From: Takakia lepidozioides
Lineage: Eukaryota; Plantae; Bryophyta
Length of the DNA stretch: 64,000 nucleotides
Direction of reading: 5' to 3'
NCBI GenBank assembly: GCA_030704615.1
Contig: CM060734.1
Coordinates: forward strand, 47,492,001-47,556,000
The translations under genes and the position numbers were made by a program. The notes below the pieces were generated by a model that had not been told where the DNA came from, searched no databases, and worked only from the letters and a program-made list of their open reading frames with translations. This document shows positions 2,706 to 64,000 of the stretch, in pieces; within the stretch, counting starts at the first letter, position 1; each line of letters begins with the position of its first letter.

Positions 2706-5700
2706 TCAAGTAGGTCCAGCCCTCCTTGATGGATCCTGGTAAGCCTGAAAAGCTCCCCGAGGCGGCGCTGGCACCCCCCAGCTTCTGGGTGAAGGCATCG
2801 CATTACTGAAAGTCCTTGAATACCCTCCTACTGCTGGGGGGTTTCTTGGACTGGGCCCATTCTGCACACAACACGGGCCATTCCACAGCACGCTATGAGC
2901 TATTTGCAGAGTCCATGTCCAACAAGCGCCTCATTCTAACTCATGAAAGATCGGATCAGCCAGCAGGAAATGTGTACAACACACCAGAGAGAGAAGCCAG
3001 AGTTGTATCATGTAAGGAAAGATTACTGTATCTGACCAAGAAAAGAACAGCCTTCTTTACTGATGGGCTTGGGCAGAAAGGGGAAGCGGAGGATAAAAAA
3101 CCTGATCAGAGCTTCGCGTCTCAGAACGGAACTGTGGAGCAGTTCGAAAACCAGACTCAGCACCAGGGGATGAGTAATTTGCCTCAGGGTGAGCCCCTGG
3201 ATCATGTCGTAAGCTGTTCTCCCTTTGAAACTCACTCTTCGCACCCTGCTGTCGTCAATTTTACAACGAACCAAGTTGAAATTAGGACCGTTAACCCTGC
3301 AATGGTACAAAGTTACTATATTGCCTGTTAATTCCACATACTGGATGAACATCTGTATGTAGAGGTCCAGCCCTCACACATACATCTGCCATTCATGAGC
3401 TGTCTGTTCAATCATACTAAGTCAAACAACTTAGAGCTGCACATATAAGCCTTATTCTAACAACCTGGAAAATAGTGCCCATCTTCTTGAGTGCCTTGGC
3501 ACGTTGCCTTAGCACCTCCTTCTTAGCACCAGGTTCATGCAGCACCTGCCACATTCCACATGTAAGCGTGCTACAACAACAATGCAAGATGCATCAAATT
3601 CTACTGAGTAGATTGGACAAGAATGTCACAATGATCACTATGCTGCTCCTATGCCAAGTAGGAGGATAATAAGATAATCTTGAGTGATCTCTCCAAATGC
3701 TTAAGCAAATAGAAGAGTGCAATAACACACAACAGTTACGACAAAGACAAGCCAATATTAGTACTTTGTGTACACTATGGTGAAGATGACTTCAAGAATT
3801 GTACCGCTTGGCAAACATGGGAGATAGTGAGCTCAATGTCAGCAACATTCAGCTTCCACAGAGAATCCAGCATTATTTGCTGCTTGGACTCCAAAAATGT
3901 TCCAATAGCCGCTTCACCCATGCCTCCACCTGCCTGTAGCTGCCTATTTATATCCTCCTGCATCTGCATCAACTGAATTGCACCTGCCACATCCCCCGGC
4001 CCAAAATACAAACACTGGTTTCCCTCTATTATGCACATTAAATGTTCAGAAAACATGAGTATGCACAATCAGTTTTAATATCTAGTCTCCATGGCGGATC
4101 TCCTACGATGGGCAATAGCTCTTCGAGCTACGGAAAAACCCTGTTAAGTTAGCTCAGACTTATAGCAGCTGTGCAAAATTGAGTTGAACTACCACTTCAA
4201 CAGCTTCCACAGAACTATCCTCGTTCCAGAAAGACCTTACGGAAGCAAGCAGCTGCTCACACAACCCAGCCTATAAGCTCTTTGAGCTCTGCAGACGTTG
4301 TAAAGTACCATTCATTTCATTGTTCCCCCTTATAAGACACAGACTACTTGCAATCCCGGACATCCGGGACAAGTTTTATACATACATAAGATAGCAAACC
4401 AAGTTTCCCTCTTGGCAAACACACGTCAGAGACCCCATCTCACAAAGTGCAGGAAGCTCCAATATCAAAGATGGAGCCGATTCACATAACTGGTTTGTGC
4501 AGCAGCCTTCAAGAACAAGAGCCAAATAAAAATGTTGAAAGGCATGCTGGTGTCAGCTAGCTATAAGGGACGCCACCACTCACACACATACAGACATGGG
4601 CATATGAGTAGCAGGGATGTTACCTGTCGCAGCAGTGACCTGAGACTTGATGAAATGGCCTTTGTCACGAACCCATTCAGTCACAAAAGGAACTCCTAAG
4701 AAGAGCATATTCTTGCCAAGCTCCTTTGCAGCCTGCCTTGAGTAGATGTATCCAATCGTGTGTAACATTGCCTCCCCAAATGCTGCCACATTTAAAGTCA
4801 TCATTCACTGAAGTTATGCCAAACCCCCCCAACTTCACAAACTTGACAGTCTTGCATGTCCTCCTGACACACGTTGCACAGATCAGACTCACTCATGGCA
4901 AAATCTCATTTGTGACCCCACTGTAGGATGAAGACACGGACTGAGAGATCTTACCAGCACTGCTTAGCCGTTCAGCCTCAACTCTGCACCACTTGGTGAA
5001 CCCCACCTTGTCACCTTGCACATAGGGTTGAATGCGCTCAAGTAAACGCTGCACTAACTTCTCCTCCCTTTCTCTTTGAATCTCCTGCAAGATTGCACAT
5101 TTTCGAGATATATCTTGCATCAAAGACGTGCTTGATTGCAGTAAACATTTTATTATACTTTGGCCTCTTAAGAGTAAACATTTCCGCCAAAAATTCTTTA
5201 GCACTCCCCAAGATGGACGGACAGCGAGGGAAACCAAAGATACACAAGTCGAAACTTATACCTTAAACTTTCCTTGCATCTGCTGCATGTCAACAGCTTC
5301 GGTATCCATTGCAGCCATGGAAGCCATTGTAAGCTGGAAAATCACCCAGAAAACAAGTTCACCCCCTTCAGTCACCGCCACAAGAATAAGAGATTACTTA
5401 ACTGCAATGATAGTGAGAATGGTATTTAACCCCATTACTAACATAAATGTAAATCATCAATCTATTTGTTGATCACATGATAGTAATATCCCATGGCGAG
5501 TGCAGATTTGGATAGTTTTCCAGTAGATGTAGACCTGGCCCACATAGTCGTGAAAGGCATCACTGCCAAACAGCATCCCAAATACAGCAGCTGGATCTAC
5601 CATCGCCTCCCTGCATCATCCATCATTTGTCCATCATAGGAGCACCATGTTTGAGCCCATTCTGTGCATACTCTACTCTACAAAGTCAGAACTCCATGCT

Positions 5701-7404
5701 GGCTGCTATTTCTAAGCAAGAATGTACATAAATGCTGCAGTGATGCCAGTGTATGGTTATAGGGCAACCTGTGCCTTCAACTACCACCAGAATCCACAGA
5801 ACAGCAGAGAACCATGAAGCCCTCTTGCAAGATAACCAAACATGCAGCAATGTGCCCATGCTTCATGAAGCTTTCAGATGACAACAACTTAAGAGACAAC
5901 CATGCAATGGTGTTCAGCGGAAACCCATACACCCCACCCCCACAATGGGACAATCTATCAGGTTTGCATGGCCATCTGAAAACATCCCAGAATTTTAAAT
6001 GTGTCATGAAGCTTGTGTGAGTATAATATGAGTAAGAATGGGAAGAAGAAGCCGCACGGTGATAGACCCTGCTTGCCCAACTTGTCATAAGCCTCCTTTT
6101 GTTGCGGGTCACTGAGAACCTGGTATGCCTCTCCCAACACCTGCACCCTCCCTCTGCTAATCTCAATCTTTTACCCACCATAGAGGCACTTGGCTACTAG
6201 AGCTAATAAGACCCTGAACGCCATCTTCTTCCAATGTTGTTCCCAATCACACATACATGTCACCCCAGCAGATGGCATGAACTTTATACATGATAATCCA
6301 GCACTCTCAAATTGCAGAAACTCTTCTGATACAATTCAAATTCCAGCTGATACAGGAAAAAGCGCTAACTTGCCTGGAAATTATGAGCCGCTTCTGGATC
6401 ATTTGGATTTTTATCAGGGTGCACCTTCCTTGCCTGTTCTCCATCCAGAACCTCATCCCTCAGTAACGCAGCTCTCTCTCTATCAAACACAGAATGCCCT
6501 GTACTTTTGCAGTGAACTGAAGCAACCTCATTTTCTCAATGCTCTGAACAGAACAAATACACTTTGCTTTTGTTTCTTCCCGGTTAAAATCCTTCTTTTG
6601 CAGCTGTGGCCAAAAACCAAGCGCAGCAACCACACAGTTGGTTGAGCCTGAGCACAGGAATATGTTTTAATTCTTCAAATTTGCTGCAAAATTCTGTGAA
6701 ATCAGAATCGTTACACCTAGAGTTAAGACCTCCTGAATGAGCACGCAAGGTAATTTTTCTGCTGCCAGGTTTGACCAGTTCCAGTGCAATGGTTTACAAA
6801 GATGGTCATAACCCCCAAGTTATAAAACTTAATTTGCTTCCAGATGAGCCACCTCCACAGGTCCTGCATATTTGCGTCCATCCGATAATATTCCGGAAAG
6901 GCGTCAAGTCACGTCCTGGCGACTGAATCTCTGGCTCATAACTCTCAGAAGAAGGGGTCAACTGCGCATTCGCTTACGTTAAGAAGCTGTAGAAGTTAAC
7001 AATTGGGCTTGAAGGAATGTAAATTGCGCCTCTGTCCTGACACTTCCCATGGAAAGACTGCCTAGTGAAGGACACGTCAAAATTCGAGCGAGATATGGGC
7101 TCCTCCTCATAATCAGATAAGGAGGGCAAGATGTACATTCCGTCGGACACCAGAAACAGTGCTCGAAGTTCTTCGGTGAATTTACCTTTGCAGATTGGTA
7201 CTACAACCGCTGATGAGAAAAGCAGCACAGTATCACACAGACAGAGATCACAACATTCTATCATTTTCCCAGTTTTGCAATATTGACAAAAGACGGAAGC
7301 CAAAGACAGAAGGACACCTTAACGTAGTAGGCCTTCTTAATGTCAGCAGGGGTGGCATCCGGGGGTACCCCCAACACTTCATAGTACTTAGTGTCCTTCA
7401 CCAT
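2706..7404 (-). CDS. DnaJ-domain chaperone with DnaJ-X domain (chaperone protein dnaJ 10-like), multi-exon
   Basis: Exons about 7404-7318 ([29 protein letters not shown]), 6433-6374 ([13 protein letters not shown] motif), 6140-6058, 5610-5535 ([12 protein letters not shown]), 5333-5262, 5084-4955, 4782-4624 ([14 protein letters not shown]), 3983-3805 ([11 protein letters not shown]), 3545-3465. Terminal exon(s) between 3300 and 2706 are uncertain. Confidence 0.9.
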
Positions 7405-27519: not shown

Positions 27520-29914
27520 ATGACAATGTCTAGGGACATAGGATTTAGTACGCGTTCTCTTCGTGGGCCTATCATATTCTACGAAGCACCTCAAGATTCG
27601 GAATGGTTTATTGCCATTCAGACCAGGGGCGAATGCGCTGAGGTGATGCGGCTCTTGAAGAAGGAACCTGGGCTGCTACGGCAAACAGGTCTTTACGGCC
27701 GTACTGCTTTGCACAAGGCAGTTATCGAAGGCTGCGCACAGCTAGTGGTAGAAGTGCTACTACTGGTTTTAACAGCCAAAATAACTGTGGATTTGACTCT
27801 CGGGGAACTACTTCAGGCAGTCGATAGTTCATGTGATCAGACAGCACTTGTGATTGCCACAGTCATTGGGAATCGAGATATTATCAACCGTCTGAACGAT
27901 GCCACCAAGTTATGGCAAGATAATACTCCCAGCGAGCTTGGTGGAAGTGGCAACGATTCCGATGTGGCAACGATACCTGACAACGATTCCGAATGGGCAA
28001 CGACGGAAGATCAAGTGAGGGACTGGCAGGATAAGCAGCTACCCAAACTACAGGAGGAATTTTTAACAGTTTTCGAGCATTTCTCTGGCGATGGAAATAA
28101 TGGAGAAGAATTTTATGTCCTTCACTGGGCATGTGCAAAGAATACATGTCAGTCTCAAGAGATCATAAGGCGTATAGTTGCCATGGCGAGGGAGGAACTT
28201 CACTCAGATCTTATACGTTGTCTCTACAAACTGCAAGATCACCGAGGCATGACTCCGTTGCATGTTGCAGCTACCAATGACACTAGCGGCAACCTGTCGC
28301 TACTTCTCGAGTTAATTCCTGAAGAGGAGTTCGAAGACTGTGTGAATGCACGTGATGGTGCAGGACGGACACCGTTGCATCGAGTTGCTGCGCGGTCTGG
28401 AGACAAGTTTGACATGCTTGGTGTCCTTGTGAAGGATGGGAGGACAGACTTGAACGCAGGCTTCTCTCCACTTGGAGGTGAGGGTTATTCATGGCAGTAC
28501 AGTAGAGCTTATTGCAGCTCCAGAACGGCCCTACACTTGGCTGTGGTACACAATAATCCCCTTTGTGTGAAGGAACTGCTCGGAGCAGGCTCCCGTATAG
28601 ATTTGAACTGCGTGTCTGCGCGTATTGTACACTTTGGTGAAAGTATCCACCTTGAAAATTGGACACCTGATCCACACGTGGCCCACGACGACGTGGTGCA
28701 TTGGACACCTCTGCAGATTGCTGCTATCATGGGACATCAGTCCATATTGAAAATGCTAGTCAAGGTACGAGTATGGCATCTAGTTGATCTTCTTCTTACA
28801 TAAGATATTCACAATTAACATACCAGTTCTCCAGGTTCTCTTTTGCTCGTCCTAGAACAGGTCTAACATATTCTAAGAAAAAGTGATTGGCTTCATGTCC
28901 TCGCTGATGGATCACGTTTGTCAGGACGACCGAGCTTACGATCAAGGAAGACTGCACAACAAGTCGAGGCAGCCTGACGATCCCTTCTGGCATTATAGTA
29001 GTGTGTTGCTTATCGTTGCGCGGATTGGCAATCCAGAAGGTCTAAGAATTATCTTGGAGAGTCGAAAATTTAATCCATTTGTCTTGGATTACAAAGGTAC
29101 AACTGCACTACATCGAGCAGCAGATGCATTGGTTAGTTTTCACCATAAAGTGCAATATTACGGAGACTTCGTCGACTATGAGAGTTTGCGACTGCGGTGG
29201 GAAAAAACAAAAACCTATAGAGAAACGACGAGTGGGAAGGAATACAGTGGGAAGAAAGCGTGCATCATCTTGTTGTTACAAGCTGCCGATATGGACTTAT
29301 GGCCCAAAGATGAAGAAGGAAATGATCCTCATCCTGGACCCTCGGCATCTGAGGAAGTGTGTACATGGTGGTATGAAAAGACAGGCGTGCTCATTCGAAA
29401 CACCAAAAAAAACCTAACAATCGGTGCAAATGCCATCTCAGTGACAGCAGCATTAGTTGCAACGGCCTCTTTTGTGGGACCATTACAACCTCCCCTTGGC
29501 ATTGAGAACAATGGCACATCACTGTTCTATGAAGTTCTCGCGGTGAGAGTCTTTATAGTGAGTGATAGCTTGTCATTTTATTTGGCAGTGGCATCCATCA
29601 TGTTATCTGTGATCCCATCACTTCCTTTGCCACAAGAGCCGTTGCCAGGTGAGTTGCGGCGGCATCGCAATGCTCTAGTTGCGGCAGTGTGTTTACTCTT
29701 GCTTTCTATTGTTTGCGTGCTAGTTGCTTTCGCAGCAGCTACAATTGCAGTGCTACCTGCGTGGAGTCCTAGAGTGTTGACATTGAGCACAACCATTGTG
29801 GGTGCAGTTATATGTGTATGGGTATTAGGAGCATTCCTCTTCCGGTTAACTAGACTTACCTTTCATAAACATGAAATTGTTAAAGACATATACGAGAAAC
29901 GGGCCCTTTTTTAG
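27520..29914 (+). CDS. Ankyrin-repeat transmembrane protein with PGG domain (ACD6/ITN1-like), 2 exons
   Basis: Exon 1 27520-28764 with ankyrin motifs (GRTALHKAV, GMTPLHVAA, GRTPLHRVA, RTALHLAV, WTPLQIAA). Intron 28765-28924 (GT..CAG) restores frame. Exon 2 has GTTALHRAA, the PGG-type motif ALVATASFVGPLQPPLG and about 4 hydrophobic helices. Confidence 0.9.
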
Positions 29915-49267: not shown

Positions 49268-51349
49268 CTAGCCATCAGATACTCCAGTGTGGATTTCCTC
49301 ACAGTTTGGAGCCATTCGCTGGACTGAATGGCCAAGCAAGTCATGGAGCAAAATACCTGCTGCAACGCTCACGTTCAGACTATCAACTGCTACAGGTCCT
49401 AATACAGCCTGTATTTCTGCACCCTTCATTGGTATCTCAGGCTCAAAAGGACCTCTGTCATTAACTTTCTTAATTTCCTCTGATGGCAACCTTCCATTAG
49501 GACAGCCTTGTACTACCTGATTCGAGACTAAACCAGTGATGCAGACCAGCTCACTGCAAGATCTCTTCACCATTTTTCTCAATCCTCTGCCTTCATTACC
49601 CAGCACTAAGATAGTGGGCAACCCTGGAGAGAGATCTCGAACTGCCACTGACTGCGGCTCATTGGAAGCCCCCACAGCCCGCCATCCATTTTCCACCGAC
49701 ATGTCAATAAACTTAACCATGTTCCGGCACGACCGCACCTCCATCACTTCTAAGGCACCTGCACTTGCCTTACTCACCACCCCGCTCAGTGGTGCTGAGT
49801 TTTTAGCACACACAACCACCCCAGTAGCCCCTAAAAAGTAAGCTGAACGAAGAATAGCCCCAAAGTTTTGTGGATCCATGACTTCATCCAGGGCCAACCA
49901 AACAGGCGTTTCACCTTCTTGACCAAAGGGAGTGTCAAGATTTTCTAAAGGAACCAATTCTAAGGGAGACGCATCCAAAACCAGCCCTTGGTGAGGTCGA
50001 TTGTCCACAAGCAGATTAAGGTCATGTTTGGACGCCTCTTTCACCCTCAGCCCTGAGGACTTTGCATTGTTCAGCACCCACATAACAGCTGGCTTATCCT
50101 TCCTTTTCCCACTTTCAATTTTCTCTACCACATTCTCCTGAACATACAGCGTGTAAAACTTCCGCCTACATGCCATCAGTGCAGCTCGGATAGGCCCCAC
50201 CCCATACACTGGCTCCCCTTCCAACCTCCAGTTCACAGTTCGTTCAGATTCCCTTCCCCACTCTTTTTCTGGCAGCCTATCCCAATCTTCGTGGACATCA
50301 TCTACTTCTTCTCCCTCATCATCACTCTCCACCCACCTCTCGCCACCTCCACTCCTATCCAAGAGATTGACATTGGCGCCTCTGCGTGCGGTCCTGTAGC
50401 CATTGCCTCCTCTACTCAAGACATTGTCACCTCGGCGATCACTCCGGTACCCAATATGGCCTCCTCGGTATTGTTGCGGCTGGTTCTCATCCCATGCTCT
50501 GCTGGTTTTCCTTTCTGAAAAACGAGTATCAGCACTGCGAGGACCCCCTTCCTCACCGCCTCTGCTGGCTGAAGTACCCCTAGTGCCAAATTTGCTTCGA
50601 CCTGTGCCCAAATAGTCCCGCTCCTTGTTGGCAGGAACCAAATTTTTCTCGACATCCGCGCCTGAACGCCTGACCCTAGAGAAGCCGCTCCCAGGTGAAC
50701 TGCCCTCTCTCTGCAGCTTACCTGTTACATCCCCTCCCCTACCCTCTATATTCAGCTCGTCCCATTCCCTCCCAGCCCGCCTCACATTCTCATCGGCCTC
50801 CCTTCTACCTTCTCGAAATCCAGCCTCTCTGTTAGTAAATTTCCCTCCATTTGTCTGAGTGCCATCCCAGGAGGCTATAACATTATTCTCCTTACGGTTG
50901 GATGCACTCCGGATGCTGGGCTTCAGCGAGTCAGAAGCATGTGCCCCCTTGTCAGTATTCCAAGTATTGACCCTACTCGTGGTAACATTAGCTTTTGATA
51001 AACGACCAAGTCTCCCAGTTGATTCAGCTCCTTCAGCAGAGGCATCCATCTGTTCAACTCCACCACTTGAAGAAGGACTTTTGCCGTCAAAAAACACATC
51101 AGCAGCCTCATCCCACACTGTACTTCCTCTCCCCCGTTCCAGAGGGTAAGCCAAAGATCTGTATCCATACCTTGAAGGTCTTTCAGCAAAACCAGATGCA
51201 TTTTTCGTGGTCAACAACAAAGCACCCAAGTTCAATCTAGAGCTCCAAATGGGCCTGAGCATGGTGTAGAGGAAGGTAGGATGGCAATCCTTCCGGTTCA
51301 GCAAACGATCAGATAGTCGAGTGAAGGGGCAGATCCGAGGAGAAGCCAT
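49268..51349 (-). CDS. MRM1: SpoU/TrmH-family rRNA 2'-O-methyltransferase (MRM1/RlmB-like), organellar, intronless
   Basis: About 690 aa ORF with RPHQGLVL, LALDEVMDPQNFGAILRSAYFLG, VVSKASAGALE, LVLGNEGRGL and DSLNVSVAAGILL (SPOUT motifs). Long Arg/Gly/Ser-rich N-terminal extension. First in-frame ATG at 51349. Confidence 0.92.
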   Translation of the reverse strand: MASPRICPFTRLSDRLLNRKDCHPTFLYTMLRPIWSSRLNLGALLLTTKNASGFAERPSRYGYRSLAYPLERGRGSTVWDEAADVFFDGKSPSSSGGVEQMDASAEGAESTGRLGRLSKANVTTSRVNTWNTDKGAHASDSLKPSIRSASNRKENNVIASWDGTQTNGGKFTNREAGFREGRREADENVRRAGREWDELNIEGRGGDVTGKLQREGSSPGSGFSRVRRSGADVEKNLVPANKERDYLGTGRSKFGTRGTSASRGGEEGGPRSADTRFSERKTSRAWDENQPQQYRGGHIGYRSDRRGDNVLSRGGNGYRTARRGANVNLLDRSGGGERWVESDDEGEEVDDVHEDWDRLPEKEWGRESERTVNWRLEGEPVYGVGPIRAALMACRRKFYTLYVQENVVEKIESGKRKDKPAVMWVLNNAKSSGLRVKEASKHDLNLLVDNRPHQGLVLDASPLELVPLENLDTPFGQEGETPVWLALDEVMDPQNFGAILRSAYFLGATGVVVCAKNSAPLSGVVSKASAGALEVMEVRSCRNMVKFIDMSVENGWRAVGASNEPQSVAVRDLSPGLPTILVLGNEGRGLRKMVKRSCSELVCITGLVSNQVVQGCPNGRLPSEEIKKVNDRGPFEPEIPMKGAEIQAVLGPVAVDSLNVSVAAGILLHDLLGHSVQRMAPNCEEIHTGVSDG

Positions 51350-51410
51350 GGATGCAGGCAGGCAGCCCACCTCCCGAGTGTGCCATGTTATTGTCCTTCT
51401 TCTAACCCCT

Positions 51411-52289: not shown

Positions 52290-55200
52290 CTGGAACAAGG
52301 TGAAACATGGGAGCTAGCCAAGTGGGGAGTAGAAGCATGTTGTGGAAGCAATACATACTGTCTGCCAGGAAGAATATCAGAGATCAGGTAAGGGCTATCA
52401 ATCCGACACTTGGCTTTAGATATCTGCTTACCAGGCTGGAGTCTTACACAAACGGACTGTCCTACCTTGAATGACTCAGAATACACAACACGCATGTTAT
52501 AATGCTTGGCCTGAGAAGCTTGGGCAAACACAATGTTAGACTTAGTTGTTTCACGCAAACTATGTCGTTTAGCATCCATGGAAAGCAAAAAGACTTCCCA
52601 ATTTTCAGGCTTAGTTGCTGAGACCTATAGCTAAGAGATATGCAAAAGAGTCCTACATTTCCTACCATACAAAAGTTCAAAAGGTGAGATCTTAGCTTAA
52701 TGGGGCCACTATATTCTCTTCATTGGATTTAGCCTTTGGATTTTGGCAAGTTCCTTTAACTGTTGCTGCTAAAGAGAAAACTGCCTTCACCTACAGAATG
52801 GGCCTCTTCCAATTTGAAACAATGTCTTTTGGCCTGTGTAATGCCACTACCACTTTTCAGCGCCTTATGGACATTGTTTTAGGAAACCTTCGTTGGGAGT
52901 GTGCTTTAGTTTACATTGATGACATCAATATTTATTCTACAACGTTTGTTGCGCATCTGCTGGATTTACAGAGGGTTGTGTGCATACTTCGTGCAGTCGG
53001 GCTTAAAGTTAAAGCCAAGAAATGTTGAATGGAGTAGCTCCATTTCTTGGGCCATCTATTTTCTGCTGCTGGCATAAGTCCTGACCCAAGTAAAATCTAG
53101 TCTGTGTGGAACTATCCACCCCTAGGGATAAAACATGTGTTAAAGCCTTCTTAGGCTTGGGCTCTTACTATCGTCGCTTCATTTTTCAGTTTGCTAAGCT
53201 TGCTGCTCCACTCACTCGCTTGTTATCCAAGGATGCTCGTTTTGTGTGGGGAACTACAGAAACTTTTGCTTCTGAGAAGCTCAAAATTGCATTAACCTTT
53301 GCTCATGTGCTTGCTTATCCTGATTTTACCTTCCCATTTCTCTTGCAAACTGATGCCAGTGATTTAGCTATCTCTGCAATGTTGAGCCAAATTCAAGATA
53401 GCAAGGAGCATGCCATTGCCTACGCTTCCCGCCGCCTTGATAAACATGAACGTAACTACTCTATCATTGACAAGGAAGGCCTTGCAGTAATATTTGGGGG
53501 CAAATATTTTAGGCAATACTTGCATGGTTGTCATTTTACAATTGAAACTGATCATTTATCTTTGAAAGCCTTGCTTACTCCTCGTGAACTAACTAGCAGA
53601 TTAGCTAGGTGGGCTCTGATCCTACAAGGCTATGACTTCAACAGATTCTACACGCGAGGGAAGGATAATGTCAATGCGGATGCTTTGACGAGTGGAGAAC
53701 CCAAAATCCCTAAAACATACACTACCTTGCATGATCTTGTTCCTCATGCTTCGCATACTGCTTCATCTGTTGTGCCTGTTTCGGATCCGTTTGCCTTGTG
53801 TCATCTGCTGGATTATCCTTATGTTCTCACAGATCTGCTTGACACTTGGGATCTGCTTCAGTTTGATTTGTTGAATTTCCGTGGTATGGCATGAATTCAG
53901 GTCTGGCATCTTGTAGTAGGCTCTGGTACTTTCCCTTACCTAAGGCCTGTTCATCTTGTCTTGCATCTGCCCTGGTTTGTTTCCTGACCAAGGGACTGAG
54001 ATGCTCTTTATAGCCTGCTTGCTTCCTCATAGGCAGCCATCTGAAACATGACGTCGGGATTATGGAGAGGAAGACAACGGGGGCGGACACTTCCTTCTCC
54101 CCTGCACTAATCTATTGTTGTGTGGCCATGAGTGATGTAGGCATGGATGATCCATTGTATGATGCTCTCCTCCACAGATGCAAAAACGGGCACCCACCTT
54201 TTGGCATATCAAAGCTGCTCATGCGGCAAGTCAATTATCTTACCAGCCACCGGAAAGTGAAGGGATATTGTGCAGAGTCACTGCTTTGGAAGGTCCCTCT
54301 GATGTGGACGTCCCTTCTAGGTCCGAGTCCATGCTTCCTCGCATTTGTACCATGCTTCTACTTATGCTGGTCAGTGGGGGGTTAAAACTGTCAAAAGACT
54401 GCAGAAGCAGTATCACTGGAAAGGCCTTAGTAAAATTGTTTCAACTTTCATTGCAAGGTGTGTACCCTGTCATGCCAAGACCATCCTACCTAGGACCGAA
54501 GCATCCTTATCTTTACAGCCAATCCCGATGACTGAACCATTTGCCAGGGTTGGCTTAGATCTTGTTGGACCCCTTAATCCACGGTCCAAGAGCCATGCAT
54601 AACTTGCGGTTGCTCGGATTTACCTGACGAAATGGGTTGAGCTCTGACTAGGGTGCTAAGGAGTGTGAAGTGGTGCGTTCAATGGTTTCTTGACAAGGTG
54701 ATACTTCGAATCTTGATGGTGCCCCCTCTTGAAAAATCCTCACGGATCAAGGTACTCCATTCAGGATAAGTGAGGAGGGAAAAGTGGTGCAGTTCTTCTT
54801 TGACAAGGTGATACTTCGTCGTGGTTGCCCTCTTGAAATCCTCACGGATCAAGGTACTCAATTCTGCAACCAACTTATGGAGATTGTCTTGTTTAATCTC
54901 ACACACTAATCATGCCGTTTCTGGTCCCTATAATCCCCAGTGCAATGGTTTGACAGAACGATTTAACAAAACTATGTGCCAGATGCTAGAAAGAACCAAC
55001 TGCCAGTAACTCCCATGTAAGAGCCTGAATCATTTCAGGAGATTGGAGAAATAGAAGCCCCTGAAATATGACTCCAAAGTCTGCAAGGAACAGCTAAGGC
55101 ACCTGCATAATAGAGGTGTGATGACTAACATGAATTATGCTAGTTCAGATCAGCTAGGTCCAACTCAATTGCGGAATTGTCGCTTGGAAGTAGTAACAGT

Positions 55201-55670
55201 GATACTATATTGGCAATACTCAGGATGAAAAAATCGACTGCACAATCTATTTGGTGTGCAAAAAAATATAAACAAATATACAAAAGAAACTGCTTGGCAA
55301 CACCAAACTTTCTTAAGTACAGAGGAACCTGTCACCTTAGGTCGCCTGGTAGTGCTGTCAACACCACCTGTTGAGTTGTCTAACCTCCAGTTTCATGTAA
55401 CATAAATGTTGTTAGATATTGTTTGGATGAGAGACTTCGATAAGTTCCTCTAGTCACTCTTGCATAGCTCGGCCAGGGAGGTACTGTCTGCATGCGTACA
55501 ATGTTTCGTTAATGCATGGCAAAGGGTAGACATCTTTCTTTGTGATGGCGTTTAAACGCCGAAAGTCCACACAAAAACGGGTTGAGCCATCCTTCTTACC
55601 CACCAAGACAATGGGACTGGCCCAAGGGGATATGGAGGGGGTGATGACACCAGCATCAAGCATCTTGGTA
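52290..55670. mobile_element. Degenerate Ty3/Gypsy pol (RT, RNase H, integrase), internally inverted
   Basis: Plus 52695-55005: FSSLDLAFGFWQV, VYIDDI, FLGLGSYYRRFI, QTDASD, YSIIDKEGLAV, IETDH, VGLDLVGP, YNPQCNGLTERFNKT. Minus 55670-55495: PWASPIVLVGKKDGSTRFCVDFRRLN. Minus 52693-52290: SPFELLYGR. Many stops and frameshifts. Confidence 0.93.
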
Positions 55671-56349
55671 ATCCGATCTGTGGCATCGACTCTTGGTGGC
55701 CTTGCTGCTATGGTGCTTCCTCCAGACGATACTTCGCATCCCACGAGAAGGAATGGCAAAACAGTGCATCGGGTGGCTTCGGGGCCTGATCACAATGCGA
55801 AGGTGGAATCGGCCAGACTACTTCAGGCTCGGGTAACAAGAACTATGGAAGTACCTTCACCTGGGTATGGACGGGTTTATACTTTGGTCACATCTGGGTC
55901 TGTTTTGCACGACAGGGCCTATCAGGTGACGGTGGGAAATTTTCCGGGGTGTAGTGTGCATGCGTGAGGAAGCTCTAGGAAAGAGAGGGAAATGGGTTCC
56001 CTGCAAGCATCTTTACTACATCTTTTTGCGTAGGATGTATTGTGATCCCAAAAGAGACCAAATCATTCACCAGACGACACTAGGTCCTGGTGAGGTACGG
56101 ACACTTTTGCAGCGAGACATTGGCAATATCGAGTAGTGTTGCATATGTTGCGATTTTTCGCAATGTCGGAAAGGGCTGCCTTGTTGGTAGAACATGTATA
56201 CACAGCTCTTAAAACTGGACAAGCAGACAATGTCTCGTTTTGAAAGGTAGTTTATTTTTTCATCGGGTTTGGTTAACGAGCCTCTAAAATTGAGTGCGTC
56301 AACGCACACCACTTCTGCCCCCACCCCCAATATTTCCCCGGGCAAAAAC

Positions 56350-56385
<36 letters not shown>

Positions 56386-57374
56386 TTGTTTTGTTCGCGG
56401 GCCTGCCAAACATGGACAAGTGTCAGTATGAAAGCTCATTTTATTTTTTGACGGCCTCTACAGAAGCATTGCGTAAATGAGCTTCATGATAACCATCTGT
56501 TTTTTTTTCCACTTCATCTGGAATAACAGGCACCTGAACAAGTTTCACAATGACAGCTCATTTGTTTTCCACGTCCTCTATACAAACAAACCCTAAATAA
56601 GCATTCATGATGACCATATGATTTTTTTTCACCTCTTCTTCAATAACAGAAACCTGAAGAAGTTTGACAATGATAGAGCTCAAGTTTTTTTTTCACCTCT
56701 TCTTCACAAACAATCCCTAATTTATTCCCTAAATAAGCATTCATGATGACCATCTGGTTTTTTTTTCACCTCTTCTTCTATAACAGAAACTTGAAGAAGT
56801 TTGACAATGATAGAGCTCAACTTTTTTTTCACCTCTTCTTCACAAACAAAGCCTAAATAAGCTTGAAGATGGTCATCTGTCAAATTTTCACCTCATCTAC
56901 ATTAATAAAAACCATTGCCTGTTTCACAATGAGTGGTCATATTTTGGGGCCTGTTCTTGCCCATCCTCATTATTTTAATCCTTTCCTTCAATATTCATCC
57001 ATCCATCATTCAATCCACCATGGATGCAATACTGGAAACGTCAGATAGCTTGACAATGAGCATCCAAACTTTTCTTGCCTCTTATTCATGCAAGAATCCC
57101 TAAGTAAGATTCATGATGACTCACCCAGCCTTTTATTTCACCTCTTCTTCAATAAGAAAACCTCAGTAACTTTCACAATGACCATTCCATGTTTTCTATA
57201 CCTCTTTTTTTAAGCGCTATAACTGCTTCCACGACAATAGGACCCTCTCTAAACAGAGGACTCGGGTATGGGGCCTGCTTCTTCCTCCACTAAACCCCTG
57301 GGCTCGCGCTTAGAGGGCAAAGCGTGAGCCGAGCTCCTGGGCTCACGCGGCTAGGTTCACGCCGTAGCTGCGCT
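55671..57374 (+). mobile_element. 3' part of GCM-MULE transposon: SWIM finger exon, subterminal repeats and terminal repeat
   Basis: YQVTVGNFPGCS..KWVPCKHLYYIF (SWIM, frameshifted), stop at 56136, tandem repeats, then terminal motif ending TCACGCCGTAGCTGCGCT at 57374. Confidence 0.8.
56430..57200. repeat. Imperfect tandem array, unit about 122 bp, about 5 copies (subterminal repeats of the MULE)
   Basis: AGCTCA at 56433, 56555, 56677 and 56814; recurring TAAATAAGCATTCATGATGACCAT and TTTTCACCTCTTCTT. Preceded by an A-run at 56351-56383. Confidence 0.88.
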
Positions 57375-57899
57375 CCAGATTAGCCCTGCCCGTGCAGGCC
57401 TTGAAGTTACCATTGCTGATGGCACGGCCTATGAACATAGGGTTGGTCACTTTGCCTATTCACATTAGTGGAAAGACTGTCCTGCTTAACTGCATTGTCA
57501 CGATGGGTGAACAAATTTTATCGGGGCTGGATTGGATGAAGGGTGCAGAAGGTCAGCATTGATGTCATGAACAATCTGATGTGCCTGCACAATGGTGAGG
57601 GACAACCTTACAAAGTGAGCCTGAGCCATGTTACTATTGCTGTTGGGACCTCTATGGCCAACTATTCTCGTCTCAAGCTTCAAGCTGAGCAAATGAAGGA
57701 GTAGGTGGGTTTGCATTATAATTGGGCCAGGTTCAGCCAGTTTCAAACACCTGGTGATAATCTGTACCAAATCATTTCCCTCCACCAGGTAAGAAGTCTG
57801 GACCTCCTCTACTTGTGGAAAAAAATACCATGTTGATCCGTGCTCCAATTGACTTTATTATCCCTGCTTTTTCTCAGCGCATAGTGCCTATAGGCCTAG

Positions 57900-58462
57900 C
57901 TTTTGCTTGCCCTGTAGGTCATTTCCTTGAGATAGAAGGCTGGAAAAAAACTTACCCTACAAAAGCACTGTCTGATTGCTTCTGGGGTTCTTGACAGGGG
58001 ATTTAAGGGTGAGGTCAGATTACTGGTTGCTAACCCAGAACGTATTAGCATCAGTATACGCAAGGGTCAGGTCATCGCTAGGCTCACTGCTTCTCCCTTG
58101 TATGCCTCTGTTCAGAAAGGCCTCAGTTTTCATGATATTGGACTGGTGGATTCTCCCATTGACCAACTCCAGACGTTTGCCTCACACTCCAGCTCCACTG
58201 TCAGTGGAACGCTCACTCCTGAGCAAGAGCAGCATTTCCAGTAGGTCTTAAAGGATATCAACATGGGTGATCACTTCACCCCTCAGCAGATTTGTCGCCT
58301 GCATATGTTCCTCCGTGACAATCTCAACATCTTTAGTAAGGGGCCCCATGACTTAGGCCACACCACCCTTCTTGATCATGGCATCATCACGGATGGTAAG
58401 CCTATCAAACAACATGCTTATAGGGAGAGTGTTCATGAGCGTAAGGTCATTCATGAAGAGGT
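57900..58462 (+). mobile_element. Gypsy pol 5' segment (dUTPase-like stretch and RT N-terminus)
   Basis: LIASGVLDRGFKGEVRLLVANPERISISIRKGQVIARL, then IFSKGPHDLGHTTLLDHGIITDGKPIKQHAYRESVHERKVIHEEV, which normally precedes KMLDAGVI. Confidence 0.8.
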
Positions 58463-59873
58463 GCAAACGAAAGCTGACGTCCTCCAACTTGCCAATCTCC
58501 AGTGCTATTAGGGAGGTTCCCACCCGCACTGGCCAAATGGTTGGTGGGGGAGGCTTAGCAATGTAGGAGTCACGGACGGTACCATTCACACAGCGAGCCA
58601 TATCGTCCGGGCAGAATCAGAATTTGTGCATCTTCGACTCCTTTGACATATATGGCCGAATCAAACCTATGAACGTCGGAGCTGGAGTACCCGCCGAGCC
58701 TTTGGCTATCGTGGACTTACACTTTTCATAACTAATGGCCCTCACTGCAGCGCAGCCAACTCTAGACCCTGGAGTAGTTCGCTCGATGTGCCATTCGGAG
58801 TCAGCACACGGTGATTCCTGCACTGCCCCCTTGTGGTCCTGCTGGAAACCCTCAATTACAGGGGTTGCAGGTAGCTCTGTAGAAGAGGAAGCACCAGCAA
58901 CCTCTTTCCTACTGGACGCCATGCTTTGTAGTGGAGAAATCTTGGGTACAGAGAAGTTGTCTCTGTCATGGCGATGTGAATCCCCATCTGATCCTGGAGG
59001 TGTATTTAGCTTGCGTTTGCAAGTCCCGAACCTTTCCTCTCCTTCCAGATGGGGCTCCCTTGATTGGAGAGGCGAGCCCATTGTGCACCTGTTCACCGCC
59101 TTTGCCATCTTCGTTGGATCCCCGGACCTTCTTGCAGCCCTCAGCATCAACTATGCTATATCTGGTCCCTTGCCCCCACATCGCCCCCTGAGGAAGTCAC
59201 GATATCTTGTTTGCTGGGTTAGAGCTCGTACCAGATCATCTTTGTAGCAATGTACAGATCTCTTCATGCTTTGCCAGATTGCTGCTTCCAGGCGGCATGA
59301 ACACTTTTTGCCAGATTGCAGGACGGCATGTCCGCAATGTCCTCAAGGGACATGTTCTGTGAAAGGAAAATGAAAGAGCGTCATTCATGCAAGCGCGGAC
59401 TATTCTGGGAACAAGGAAAGAAACTGGGCACATACAAGGGATTGCAGAGGTGAAAGGCAGCTTACAGTAGTCATGAATGCCCCCCATTGCCTGTATCTGA
59501 ACCAGTCTTCCAATTCTTTGACACCGTCCTGATCAGTAGCCCCTGACGAGAACCACCATGCTCTCACTGTCTGGTACATGGTCTCAGCCTCTTCCATTGT
59601 AGTCGCATTCTTGTACAAGAAGCAGAGCCTCATATGCTCCGCCTGCAGATCTCTTCTGATGCACCTCTTTGTATGTTTCTGCAGGGACTGAGTCCAGTGG
59701 AATAGACATATGCGCTCCCTATTAGGCATGGGTACCTTTGGATCACCAGATCCAAAAACTCGGCGCACAGCATTGAAGTTAGCCTGTGCACTATCCGCCA
59801 TAAACCCGTTGAAATTTATGCCTGTATGTCCATTAGACTCCATGACTGAAAGCAAACAATTCCACATTATCAT
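58463..59873 (-). mobile_element. Middle part of GCM-MULE transposase (second Asp, CxxH, degenerate Glu, 4-Cys domain)
   Basis: GFMADSAQANFNAVRRVFG, RICLFHW, intron about 59465-59359, PSCNLAKSVH, WHIERT..C..C..HKF*FCPDDMARC. In-frame stops are present. Confidence 0.8.
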
Positions 59874-59879
59874 TCTTAA

Positions 59880-60300
59880 CTAAGAATTTGAGTCTTTAGT
59901 CATGTGGAGTATGAGTCCATGTACTGATTCATATGGAGTGTGAGTCCAAACTATTATAGAGTTTGAATCCAACTGCTGACTAATGTGGAATGTGAGTCCT
60001 TATTGGGGAGTGTGATTTGTAACTTGGAATCTGAGTCCTAGCCCAAGTGGAGTCTAAGTCCTAATTAGGGAGTATGAGTCTTAATTATTGTCCCAACATT
60101 AGCTGCCCTACCTTTGTAAGGAGAGCATAGAACTTAAAGTTTGATATGGTGGACAAACAGTCCACTATGATGGACTGTACACATAACTATGTGGTCCAAA
60201 TCTTGGGACTCCATGCAATGGTAAGGACTACAATGACATGTATGGACAGCTCAAATTACAATCATTATGGTAGACGCTATACATGGGCTGTAAGTTCTAA
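59880..60300. repeat. Short degenerate GAGTCC/GGACT motif array (5' subterminal region of the MULE); similar motifs at 62630-62790
   Basis: Repeated GAGTATGAGTCC / GTGAGTCC / GGACT motifs at about 20-30 bp spacing. Confidence 0.65.
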
Positions 60301-60416
60301 CCTTTTAAATTCAAAAACCTCCAGACAATCAGTTTCCAAACATCTTAATCTTGACTCTGAGCCTCTAGCCTTTCTCTTGAATAAGTGGGAATTTTGAGAA
60401 AATGCTATAATCTCTC

Positions 60417-61650
60417 ATGTTTCCACATTTGGGGGTTGTGACACTGTCGGATTCCTCGGATGATGAATTGGCAGAAATACTGGCTCCCATGAACAGTCTT
60501 CCTGAAGGGGACATCGATGTTCAGGAAATCGTTAGCGTCATCCCACATCTGAAAGCATTGTCAGGAAAACCAGGATCCAAAAACGAGATCGCAGGGATAT
60601 TGTGGGATTCATTCGCAACAAAAAGGGTTCATTTCCTTCCACCTTCCTTCGACGGTGACATCCTCTTTGAGCTGAATCCAGCAACTTGTGCTGGGGGCCT
60701 TTCAGGTCTCTTGCAAGGAATGGATAAAAAGCATGATGGCCATCCATGGTGCAGAACCAAAACGTCCAATATCCACAACGATGTAAACTTGACATTCAGA
60801 AGGAGCGTTTGTGTGGGGCATCTGAGATGTGTGAATGCAAGTTGCCAGCGTTTCATGAAGAGCGGTGCTAAAAATGAGAGTGAGTGGGAAGGACTCTCCG
60901 ACAATCCTTTTATCCCAGGCTGTGCCCCACCGTCTGCCAGTACATTTGTTTGTAAGTTCTGCAAGGCGGCCCCCTCCTGCATTGCACATTGCCCTGCTTG
61001 CATGTACTATGTTACTCACCGTTGCAAAACCATGACTCGAGCCTACATTCATTTTGGGACTCACGACCATCCTGTGTCTCACGGCGATTGCAGAGATAGT
61101 GTGGAGTTGGCACGTGGGCTTGTCGTGGAGGAGTTTGCAAAGTCCCCTTCAGCCAAACCATCTGCCATAGCGCTGGCTGCCAACAAAAGTTTCCTAGAGA
61201 GGCACATTCTTGGGCAGGGAAGCGAATGCAGCTCAAGACTTGAGGGAGCTTCTTTGGATGCAGTGATGGATCACTTCTCCGTGTTGAGCTCCCCCAATAT
61301 TAGGAATCAGGTGAATGCATTGAGAGTGCGCGGTGGAAACACAGGGTCCATCGACAACATTATGGAGCTCAAGCGCATAAGTCAATATGACTTTATCAAA
61401 TCTAGCATCTTCCCGGGTCAGGGGTCAAAGGTTTACTTGTTCAAGATGTCTACGGTGGGCGAGGGCAGTGGCGTCGGCCTGGCCAGACGTATGCAACAAG
61501 GGGGGGATCTGGAGAAAGCCTGGATGATGTTCGATCATTGCAAACGAGTGAAGGGTTGGACAACCATGTCTTGCCATGTTTACGACCCAAACTACCAAAG
61601 AATAATGACAATTGCCATCTGTGACATGCAGTCTGAAGATACAGAGTCCA
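60417..61650 (+). mobile_element. N-terminal part of GCM-MULE transposase (GCM-type Zn domain and first catalytic Asp)
   Basis: Open frame of about 411 codons: DGHPWCRTKTSNIHN..RRSVCVGHLRCVNASC..CKFC..C..HFGTHDHP, then AWMMFDHCKRVKGWTTMSCHVYD..AICDMQSED. Confidence 0.85.
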
Positions 61651-61718
61651 CGCTTTGCAGCTTCAACGTGAGCTCAGCTCCCAGGCTCACGGGGCTGGGC
61701 TCACGCCATAGCTACGCT
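61651..61718. repeat. Terminal repeat of the GCM-MULE (partner of 57323-57374)
   Basis: 61667-61718 matches 57323-57374 at 43 of 52 positions, and similarity stops at the same base (..TAGCTRCGCT). Confidence 0.75.
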
Positions 61719-63880
61719 GATTGCTATATCGTGAGTTGTGAGATTCGTCCCCACCTTTATTGGCCAATGTTTGGTGGATGAGGCTTTATGTCCACTGAAG
61801 CTCGTATTGTCTCATTCACACACCTCCTACTGTCGTCGATGCAAAACCAGAACTTGTGATTCATTGCCTCCATTTGCCCGAATGGCCAAAAAAAACCTGT
61901 AAAGGTAGGAACTGGAGTCCTTACACTACCTCTGGATATTGGTGATGTGCACTTTTGAAATATGTTGGTTCTGATTGCACTACATTGCACTCTAGGCCCA
62001 ACATTAATACATTCTATGCGTCAGTTTTTTTTTCACAAACTTCATAGAAATTTAGGATTGTGGATTAATACCAACAAACTATGTATAGGAAAAATGACGT
62101 AGTGATGTCAAAAAATGGATAATGTAGGCTGCAATCATGGAAGAATCATCAACGCAACGTTGGTGGCAAGCCTTGGAACGTAGATGTTACATGTAGATAG
62201 GTGCAACATTATGACTCACCACCTATCTTATGCCTATATGTCATCCTCAAGTGATCAAAAATAGTACCTCCATCAAGGATTTCCTGAAAGTCTCTCCTTG
62301 CCATATTTGCCACAAAGGTTTCAACCGTTGGCCGGCATCCACCGTTGGCGCAGCTCAACCACTTTTAGTTTTTCCGCAAGTGCCTGCATCTCTGGGACCC
62401 AAAACTGGAACACCAATCAAGATGCATGATCTGTGAACAGCTGAAGTTCCTTATACACCTATTTGACATAGGCTTCATGTGGGATGTCATACAAGCAAAG
62501 ATGGTAAGTATGCTTACAAGATACCACCACCATGTGAGTAGAGCAACTTCATGATCAAGCCAGTTAGGAACATTTAAGTTTCAAGTATTTCTGATTGCAA
62601 AGTTTGTATGTTTTCTTGTTTACAAAGTGTGGTTCTTGACTTGGGACTTAAGGTCCAATCCTCAGGACTAGTATAGTCTTACGATTGGACCTTCAACCCC
62701 TTTCATTGACTATAAGTACTCCCAATGTGGGACTACAAGTATTACTATTAGTCTTCACAGTGGAACGAGTCCTTATTGGGGCGTATTACCGTGGACAAAA
62801 CAAAGGGGGCCACCATGCACCGTGTCTGCAATGCCTGCACAAAAAGAGGAATATGAAAATATGGCAGAGTTGAGCTCAGAATGATTGATACACTTTATTT
62901 GAATTCACAGATAGACGCTTACAATGAATGGCATGTGCATTTGCCCTGGTTCCGTGAACGAAATGTATGTGTTTGTCATAAATGCAAAGTCTTCACACGG
63001 TAACCTGGAAACCAGCATGGGAAGCGGGCATGGCTCGTATGTGTTCAAAGAGAATTTGGCGGAGCCCCACGTGAGCTGTCCCGCTGCAGAAGGGTGATGA
63101 CTTCTCCGTAGCCTAGTGTGGCTTGGTGAATGAATTGGTCTCTCTTACCGTCGCAACACATAATTACAAGGTATATATAATATTGATGCTTGCAGAGGAT
63201 CCACTTCCCTCTCATGCCGAGAGCGCCCTCACGCATCGTTACAAAATCCGGACAAGTGCATTTAGGGAAATTCCCCACGGTAACCTGATATTCTTTGCCA
63301 TGAAGAATTGAGCCAATAGACAGCACTGTGTAAATCCGTCCATACCCCGGGGCAGGGACTTCGGTGATACGAGTCACCCGAGCCTGCAAAATTCTAGCCG
63401 ATTCCATCTTGCATTTGTGATCTGCACCCGATTCGTCATCAGCCGATTAGCGCTGTTTCTCAGCCGAGGACAAGAAATATTCACGCACTTGCAATGCCCA
63501 ACGCAAACCGACCTTCAAAATTTCAATCCAATGTCGTTGTGGATGTTCGATGTTTTTGTCATGCACCAAGGGTGTCCGTCATGTTTCTTGTCCATGCCTT
63601 GCAGAAGCCTAGCCAGTCCACTGGAAGACGTGGGAGGGTTGAGCTCAAACAAGATGTCCCCATCAAACTTTGTTGGCAGGTATTGAACTTGCTGCACACG
63701 AAGGGACTCCCAATCAACAAAACGCAGCTCGCTCTTGCACCCAGGCACCCCTGCGAGGGCTTTCAATTTCGGAATGACACTCGTTATCTCCTGCAATTCG
63801 TCATCATCCAAGATGGGAGTCTACACTAGCGGAGGAATGTCAGAAACATCCTCCGAGGACGAGTCTGAAAGAGTCACGAA
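61719..63880 (-). mobile_element. Second, diverged and internally deleted GCM-MULE copy or copies
   Basis: 63880-63480: VTLSDSSSED..YLPTKFDGDILFELNP..QGMDKKHDGHPWCMTKTSNIHND. 63420-63045: intact SWIM (CTCPDF..CKH). 61990-61719: 4-Cys domain (HKFWFCIDDSRRC). Confidence 0.85.
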
Positions 63881-64000
63881 TGTAGTGGATGTGCTCACCT
63901 CTTGTTTCACATGAACTGTGCCCTTCTGCTGCACGACTGATGCTGCAGTGCCAGGGGTAACTACTGATCCTGCTGATTGTCTTCTCTCTTTTCCAAGGAC

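Follow-up and report, generated by a model that had tools for sequence, protein, structure and literature searches.

Mutator-like DNA transposons (Mutator-like elements, MULEs) move by binding of their terminal repeats, followed by excision and reinsertion of the element (cf. Liu & Wessler 2017). MULE clades have been described with SWIM, FLYWCH, CCHC, PHD or C2H2 fingers, terminal inverted repeats (TIRs) of 14-640 bp and target-site duplications (TSDs) of 8-11 bp; GCM/WRKY types and bryophyte hosts are unmentioned in that account (Dupeyron et al. 2019). MULE transposases commonly carry insert-containing WRKY-GCM1 domains, and the animal-only GCM1 (GCM, glial cells missing) possibly arose from a Zn-ribbon that entered the insert or linker of such a MULE domain (Babu, Iyer, Balaji & Aravind 2006, PMC1702500). 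Here we examine a 64,000-nucleotide stretch of Takakia lepidozioides DNA (GCA_030704615.1, contig CM060734.1, positions 47,492,001 to 47,556,000, forward strand), called the window; positions below count from its first nucleotide. Its last 9 kb contain an element, copy 1, that is very probably a dead, single-gene copy of about 4.96 kb of a multi-copy Mutator (MULE/IS256) DNA transposon in a plant-like genome.

The family represented by copy 1 resembles Mutator/MULE transposons (MuDR MURA, Jittery and the FAR1/FHY3 relatives) and IS256 (ISCth4, PDB 6XG8) in the layout of its RNase H-like DDE (Asp, Asp, Glu) catalytic core: the first D lies on beta-1, the second follows beta-4, and CxxH comes after beta-5. 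An N-terminal WRKY-GCM1-type domain, a C-terminal SWIM finger, TIRs of tens of bp and many deletion derivatives are also common to both. The family differs in being too diverged for the profiles PF10551, PF00872 and PF21056, and in having an extra 4-Cys module, a conserved N-terminal region and one intron at a fixed position. From N to C terminus, the family transposase consists of the N-terminal region (not in copy 1), a zinc domain, the DDE core with CxxH, the 4-Cys module and SWIM.

As assembled, the repeat nest at 55.4-64 kb shows a 454-codon open reading frame (ORF) at 60417-61781 (+) and several shorter ORFs on both strands. To map the element, we used as tblastn probes the two exon ORFs of an intact relative, L001, which lies on a 675-kb ENA contig and has an exon-1 ORF of 730 aa and an exon-2 ORF of 463 aa with about 250 bp between them. 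Exon-1 residues 215-586 matched 60534-61646 (+), exon 1 from about residue 587 to its end together with exon-2 residues 4-314 matched 59873-58404 (-), and exon-2 residues 324-455 matched 55737-56115 (+). The minus-strand alignment itself covered exon-1 residues 565-730 and reached 59933. The gene is thus complete from residue ~120 onward, in three stretches of alternating orientation. Copy 1 as a whole lies in four pieces (61650-61718, 59874-61649, 58461-59873 and 55673-57374), with breakpoints at 55672/3, 58460/1, 59873/4 and 61649/50. The first-pass annotation, made from the sequence alone, had proposed that four pieces starting at 55671 reassemble into one element of about 5 kb. The L001 matches and the junctions of other copies agree with this, and the proposed start falls within 2 bp of breakpoint 55672/3. 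The results below show how the pieces are ordered and where they break, the termini, the presence of many copies, the folds and the residues that are conserved.

Junctions of other copies were examined in Logan contigs from four runs, aligned on 57200-63199; three runs came from one sample and one from a second study (plant metagenome). In all four runs, and hence in both studies, contigs of other copies joined 59873 to 61649 on opposite strands. This joint reads in frame (..SEDTES|MIMWNCLL..), as in relatives. Beyond 58460, other copies continued in one of two ways: into the reverse complement of 55652-55672, which is retroelement (..HEE|ITKMLDAG..), or into the reverse complement of 55673-55702, which is transposon (..FRLH|RSVAST..). 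Reverting 59874-61649 restores the transposase, and reverting 55673-58460 restores both the transposon and the adjoining retroelement. Because contigs of other copies show the normal order, these results point to two local inversions specific to copy 1.

The alternating orientations could also be an assembly artefact, the true locus being collinear. Each of the four breakpoints falls in repeats, a setting prone to assembly error, and independent contigs bridged only the 59873/4 junction and the outer terminus; the sample behind these contigs may also be the source of the assembly. Contigs bridging 55672/3, 58460/1 and 61649/50 were not seen in the four Logan runs. However, the sequences that meet at the junctions are not homologous (retroelement and transposon, TIR and unique leader), a pattern that collapse of repeats would not create, and both inversions are reciprocal to within 1-2 bp. 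Contigs with zero mismatches and single-copy depth span 59844-60465, crossing 59873/4 in two runs, and cross the outer terminus 61718. We consider an artefact improbable and take the two local inversions (55673-58460 and 59874-61649) as real. We infer that they scrambled copy 1 after its insertion; one of them has a breakpoint in common with the adjoining retroelement. The two inversions, of 2.8 and 1.8 kb, fall within 6 kb. No inverted repeats were found at their breakpoints, and one breakpoint coincides with the inner edge of the palindrome-rich terminal repeat.

Two 52-bp terminal repeats, at 57323-57374 and 61667-61718, are identical at 43 of 52 positions (82.7%; E 2e-9). An 18-mer of the terminal repeat occurs twice against 0.03 expected, and only within the two repeats. 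The annotation had given these repeats as the bounds of the element, and they are, with one correction: in the present sequence they are direct, becoming inverted, as expected of a MULE, only once both blocks are turned back. The restored element lies on the minus strand. Five Logan contigs of other copies end at 61718/9 with unlike flanks. Summed k-mer depth, which is not a copy number, was 81,515 and 18,229 in the terminal bins, about 3,000-4,000 in internal bins and about 60 in unique sequence. The far greater depth of the terminal bins indicates many derivatives having common ends. The L001 genome has a homologous terminal motif, clustered GCTCAC words followed by ..TAGCGTCG[TC]TG, at five loci that belong to other subfamilies. 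On the basis of the contig stops, depth and homologous motif, the outer edges of the repeats are the true termini. No further copies of the TIR were found in the window or in metagenome contigs, and a 35-mer of the terminus had no match in metagenome scans. An 18-mer of the terminus gave 120 loci there, all of them chance matches with at most 17/34 identity upstream.

The terminal repeat of copy 1 is built of short palindromes. Upstream of the gene in L001 (2316-3974), perfect palindromes of 18-40 nt (GCTTGCGCT[A/G]GCGCAAGC) recur every 180-550 bp. Irregular short GAGTCC/GGACTC repeats, which may be subterminal binding sites or a minisatellite, occur at 59890-60090 in the copy 1 leader and at 62640-62790 downstream of copy 2, a neighbouring family member. 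The 3' untranslated part of copy 1 (56349-57185) has a run of about 35 A and then tandem repeats with units of about 60-137 bp.

A gene of roughly 1000 aa with one intron had been predicted, and GT..AG sites with a pyrimidine tract at 59465->59357 (-) support this. The intron position is common to all relatives: their exon-1 ORF ends and their exon-2 ORF begins there. Exon 1 of copy 1 is open for 547 codons across the inversion joint. Exon 2 contains three in-frame stops and two frameshifts; compared with other copies, it has lost 1 bp at 59241. At the catalytic Glu codon copy 1 encodes Lys, as the annotation had noted; Glu stands there in relatives, and GAA is read in most of the other copies of this genome (59308 T>C; Logan contigs). 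The same Glu-to-Lys change was seen in several unrelated copies (P0044, P0119, P0132, P0154 and P0160 in alignment A5), probably reflecting recurrent G-to-A transition in silenced copies. A search of 59800-60700 with a hidden Markov model (HMM) of the family's conserved N-terminal ~120 aa found nothing significant; a 543-bp leader takes the place of this region. With Lys for the catalytic Glu, stops and frameshifts in exon 2 and no N-terminal region, copy 1 is dead. Between the 5' terminus and the transposase ORF there are 543 bp, and after the stop there is 1.2 kb of repeats, leaving no room for a second gene. A Pfam scan upstream of the relatives L001 and L122-L124 gave no match to ParB or a methyltransferase.

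The first-pass annotation had placed the element among Mutator-like transposons with a DDE core, naming two Asp residues and CLFH as candidate catalytic residues. All were borne out in alignments of relatives, and the triad with CxxH between the second D and the E, as in MULEs, is invariant or nearly so across the family. Exons and inverted pieces were searched and folded separately, and the folds of the core and of the zinc domain were predicted from alignments of natural relatives. For the core, the model represents exon 1 of an intact relative (residues 398-721 of P0005; predicted local distance difference test, pLDDT, 78). It has the order of elements of an RNase H-like fold: beta-1 carries the invariant D of MFDH, the invariant D of FMADSA follows beta-4, 66 residues on, and CxxH follows beta-5. 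The predicted fold was nearest to the IS256-family ISCth4, which came first in both structural searches, and to Pfam-MULE clusters; all named ESM Atlas neighbours are MULE.

Could the core belong instead to another C/DxxH DDE superfamily (hAT, P or Kolobok), or to a family of host genes that arose by domestication? The fold lists do include Hermes (hAT) and P-element transposases with weak scores, and no Pfam MULE match was found. ISCth4 ranks ahead of them, though, the named ESM Atlas neighbours are all MULE, and a D-to-E spacing of about 130 aa leaves no space for the large insertion domain of hAT. Both the SWIM finger and the WRKY-GCM1 domain are companions typical of MULE cores. Terminal repeats and a high copy number speak against a host gene, as do flanks that differ and copies that have decayed. 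We regard these alternatives as highly improbable and place the family with the Mutator (MULE/IS256) transposons.

Several results weigh against this overall reading. MULE PF10551, Transposase_mut PF00872 and ZSWIM1-3_RNaseH-like PF21056 gave no match at E up to 10 in the window pieces, eight full exon-1 relatives and 21 core segments; among about 45 family members scanned, there were 0 matches to Pfam MULE, Transposase_mut, GCM or FAR1. An HMM profile of the core gave chance matches only against PDB sequences. Superfamily placement thus rests on predicted structures, and in these the core scores are moderate (Foldseek E about 4e-3) and the helix with the Glu is absent, the exons being unjoined. 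SWIM PF04434 did not reach its gathering threshold: 8 of 27 members matched at the right place, with a best E of 0.0095. At copy 1 itself, no TSD is seen: the flanking bases outside the termini (57375.. and 61719..) differ at every length from 8 to 11 bp, and the flanks are unrelated, a retroelement fragment on one side and a fragment of another family member on the other. Such flanks imply that the locus was rearranged at least once more, and that this event, possibly an aberrant transposition, broke the DNA exactly where the transposon ends. Being single-copy at 90% likeness, the 543-bp leader offers no check, from other copies, on its junction with the 5' TIR. Among relatives, L125 has 10 bp repeated with one indel at its ends and L001 has a 6/10 match next to a 10-bp terminal repeat, both weak TSD candidates; the comparison covered relatives with defined ends, the left ends of L122-L124 being undefined.

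The C-terminal modules were assessed in alignments of relatives. An extra 4-Cys domain and a SWIM finger had been predicted and both are present there, the SWIM of copy 1 being frameshifted. Copy 2 has an intact CxC..CxH motif of SWIM (63260-63186), as do nearly all relatives (alignment A5); the SWIM match of copy 2 had an E of 0.048, below threshold. Both modules probably make contacts with DNA or with protein.

The N-terminal domain had been described from its motif pattern as a GCM-type zinc domain, and the pattern is present, with all motifs between 60747 and 61073. In the predicted structure, the domain has the four-stranded zinc-stabilised sheet with C..C ... H.H ligands that characterises the WRKY-GCM1 fold. 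Its top nine structural matches are all WRKY or GCM, clearly above unrelated rows. The first Foldseek match was GCM (1odh_A) over the whole 157 residues (158 columns), with probability 1.00 and template modelling (TM) scores of 0.46/0.47. GCM was the only full-length match and gave the longest aligned stretch (123 residues); WRKY domains scored as well as GCM in the structure comparison. The 23 relatives examined keep C-x5-C-x4-C, C-x2-C, two more Cys and H-x-H, with seven Cys and three His invariant; the seven Cys and three to four His conserved in all are enough for two zinc sites. About 77 residues separate the WRKY-type ligand pairs, and four further invariant Cys lie in this insert. The model indicates that the domain is a WRKY-GCM1 fold with a GCM-like insert.

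The modelled domain shares with GCM (PDB 1ODH, PF03615) a beta-sheet zinc fold in which a long insert separates the Cys from the His ligands, and has GCM as its best full-length match. The GCM sequence also has W..[ST]N.HN, C-x5-C-x3/4-C, C-x2-C and HDHP patterns like those of the family. The family domain differs from GCM in showing no HMM-level similarity, with 14-15% identity in structural alignments, and in sitting on a plant transposase, whereas GCM has been described as animal-only (Babu et al. 2006, PMC1702500). Pfam GCM (PF03615) gave no match in 23 members at E up to 10, and a profile search of PDB sequences with the zinc domain gave chance matches only, 1ODH not among them. We therefore keep the GCM label for a likeness of predicted fold, not of sequence profile.

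Specific kinship of the zinc domain to GCM is possible. Against it stands the reading that this is an ordinary insert-containing WRKY-GCM1 domain of MULEs, its likeness to animal GCM being superficial or convergent, so that 'GCM-type' would say no more than the known architecture of MULEs; we give this an even chance. Such MULE domains share with the family an insert between conserved cysteines and fusion to a MULE catalytic domain (PMC1702500). The family insert differs in its length, about 77 residues between C-x5-C and H-x-H, and in its four more invariant Cys, and so resembles the proposed intermediate or GCM-like state and not the plain basic insert. Three further observations disfavour an ordinary domain: the best PDB match is GCM over the whole length, with by far the longest aligned stretch; the Cys/His set suffices for two zinc sites, as in GCM; and in one near ESM Atlas cluster, from Mucoromycota, Pfam GCM is found on 12% of members, which we treat as a lead only. 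The stronger proposal, that the zinc domain of the family is truly homologous to animal GCM, with a WRKY-type sheet, an inserted zinc module and an HDHP end, seems to us rather doubtful.

Copy 1 does not stand alone. A second diverged copy alongside had been reported and was found as copy 2, with 67-69% nucleotide identity to copy 1; besides it there is a third fragment, which abuts the 5' terminus of copy 1. The bins at 62800-63199, overlapping the 3' part of copy 2, had a summed k-mer depth of 125,000-154,000, an extremely abundant repeat; most of the transposase gene had 3,000-6,000. In a word search the long ORF had 43 homologues, the best at 58% identity, and exon 2 had 308, none with a precomputed Pfam domain; one public protein library holds 1781 cluster representatives of the family. 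The best 150 of these 1781 were all fragments of the same family; none of them linked it to named MULEs, and none was a spliced protein of full length. In the literature we found no paper on this lineage, and none on a GCM-like domain of a plant transposase beyond Babu et al. 2006. The suggestion of a distinct, poorly described lineage fits these results, and judged against Pfam and the literature the lineage is probably undescribed. The novelty is that of the lineage and its DNA-binding domain, not of copy 1.

Table 1. Positions of copy 1, its parts and neighbouring family members in the window
Feature	Position	Strand	Description	Basis
5' terminal inverted repeat, copy 1	61650..61718	-	52-bp core 61667-61718; outer end 61718	
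Inverted block B	59874..61649	+	543-bp leader 59874-60416; first 411 transposase codons 60417-61649, open, no stops	tblastn, contig joint
Predicted WRKY-GCM1-fold zinc domain with long Cys-rich insert (GCM-like)	60627..61106	+		AlphaFold model, pLDDT 83
Zinc-domain landmarks	60747-61073	+	W 60747; SNIHN 60765-60779; CVGHLRC 60810-60830; CKFCK 60951-60965; HDHP 61062-61073	
First catalytic Asp (MFDH)	61533..61535	+	strand beta-1 of RNase H-like core	invariant in alignments
Block E, original orientation	58461..59873	-	rest of exon 1 59873->59466, open; intron 59465->59357; first ~300 exon-2 codons 59356->58461, 3 stops and 1 frameshift	tblastn, splice sites
Second catalytic Asp (FMADSA) and CLFH (CxxH)	59697..59795	-	Asp 59795-59793; CLFH 59708-59697	D, C and H invariant in 21-25 relatives
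Lys codon AAA at catalytic Glu position	59306..59308	-	relatives NLAE[T/S]VHNKW	alignment A5, tblastn
Conserved 4-Cys module (WHI..C-x11-C..FC-x6-C)	58590..58795	-	between core and SWIM; stop codon inside in copy 1	alignment A5
Inverted block A, transposon part	55673..57374	+	exon-2 end, 3' region, 3' terminal repeat	tblastn, repeats, TIR, loose ends at 58460
Frameshifted SWIM remnant, copy 1	55941-56010	+	CxC lost; stop at 56134-56136	
Poly(A) run and tandem repeats, 3' region of copy 1	56410-57185	+		
Inverted block A, remainder	57375..58460	+	retroelement fragment, former 3' flank of transposon; continues in 55672->55454 (-)	
Other diverged family member, fragment	61719..61990	-	exon-2 residues 192-283 with 4-Cys module; abuts 5' terminus of copy 1	tblastn; 64% nucleotide identity to 58516-58765
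Copy 2	63045..64000	-	N-terminal part with zinc domain 64000->63443 (one stop) fused to SWIM end 63422->63081; runs off window	

The remainder of inverted block A appears to be a retroelement fragment resembling a protease and the start of a reverse transcriptase (RT); the RT-like reading comes from motifs, and the retroelement assignment also from read junctions. Pfam gave no match on the short retroelement pieces 55457-55759 and 57392-58508. Elsewhere in the window, a Ty3/Gypsy-type retroelement is represented by RNase H and integrase domains at 53106-55009 (+), with an adjoining RT-like piece at 55672-55454 on the opposite strand. An ankyrin-repeat and PGG-domain gene and an uninterrupted ORF of 699 codons, with domains of SpoU-type RNA methyltransferases, were found at 27520-29914 (+) and 49268-51370 (-). 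The pairing of ankyrin repeats with PGG is typical of plants. A plant as host agrees with this gene, with the plant metagenome label of one Logan run that contains the family and with the spliceosomal introns.

By analogy with other MULEs, we infer a DNA-binding specificity and a cut-and-paste mechanism for intact members: the zinc domain would bind the terminal repeats, and the DDE core would then excise and reinsert the element. Clustered GCTCAC-type words, which every subfamily examined has near its termini, are candidate binding sites for the zinc domain. If the placement holds, a large Mutator lineage is present in public plant-like assemblies, unseen by standard annotation, and the family's termini and otherwise invisible ORFs would account for many 'hypothetical proteins'. 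Copy 1 itself, dead and rearranged, is of little weight but shows that a single-gene form of the family exists. The zinc domain would be the closest to GCM reported on a transposase outside animals, and so may bear on the origin of GCM/WRKY-type transcription factors from transposases. Were the domain a true GCM homologue, a MULE of this sort would be the kind from which GCM transcription factors were domesticated, and the proposal that GCM1 came from an insert-containing MULE domain (Babu et al. 2006) would become testable with a living transposon family outside animals.

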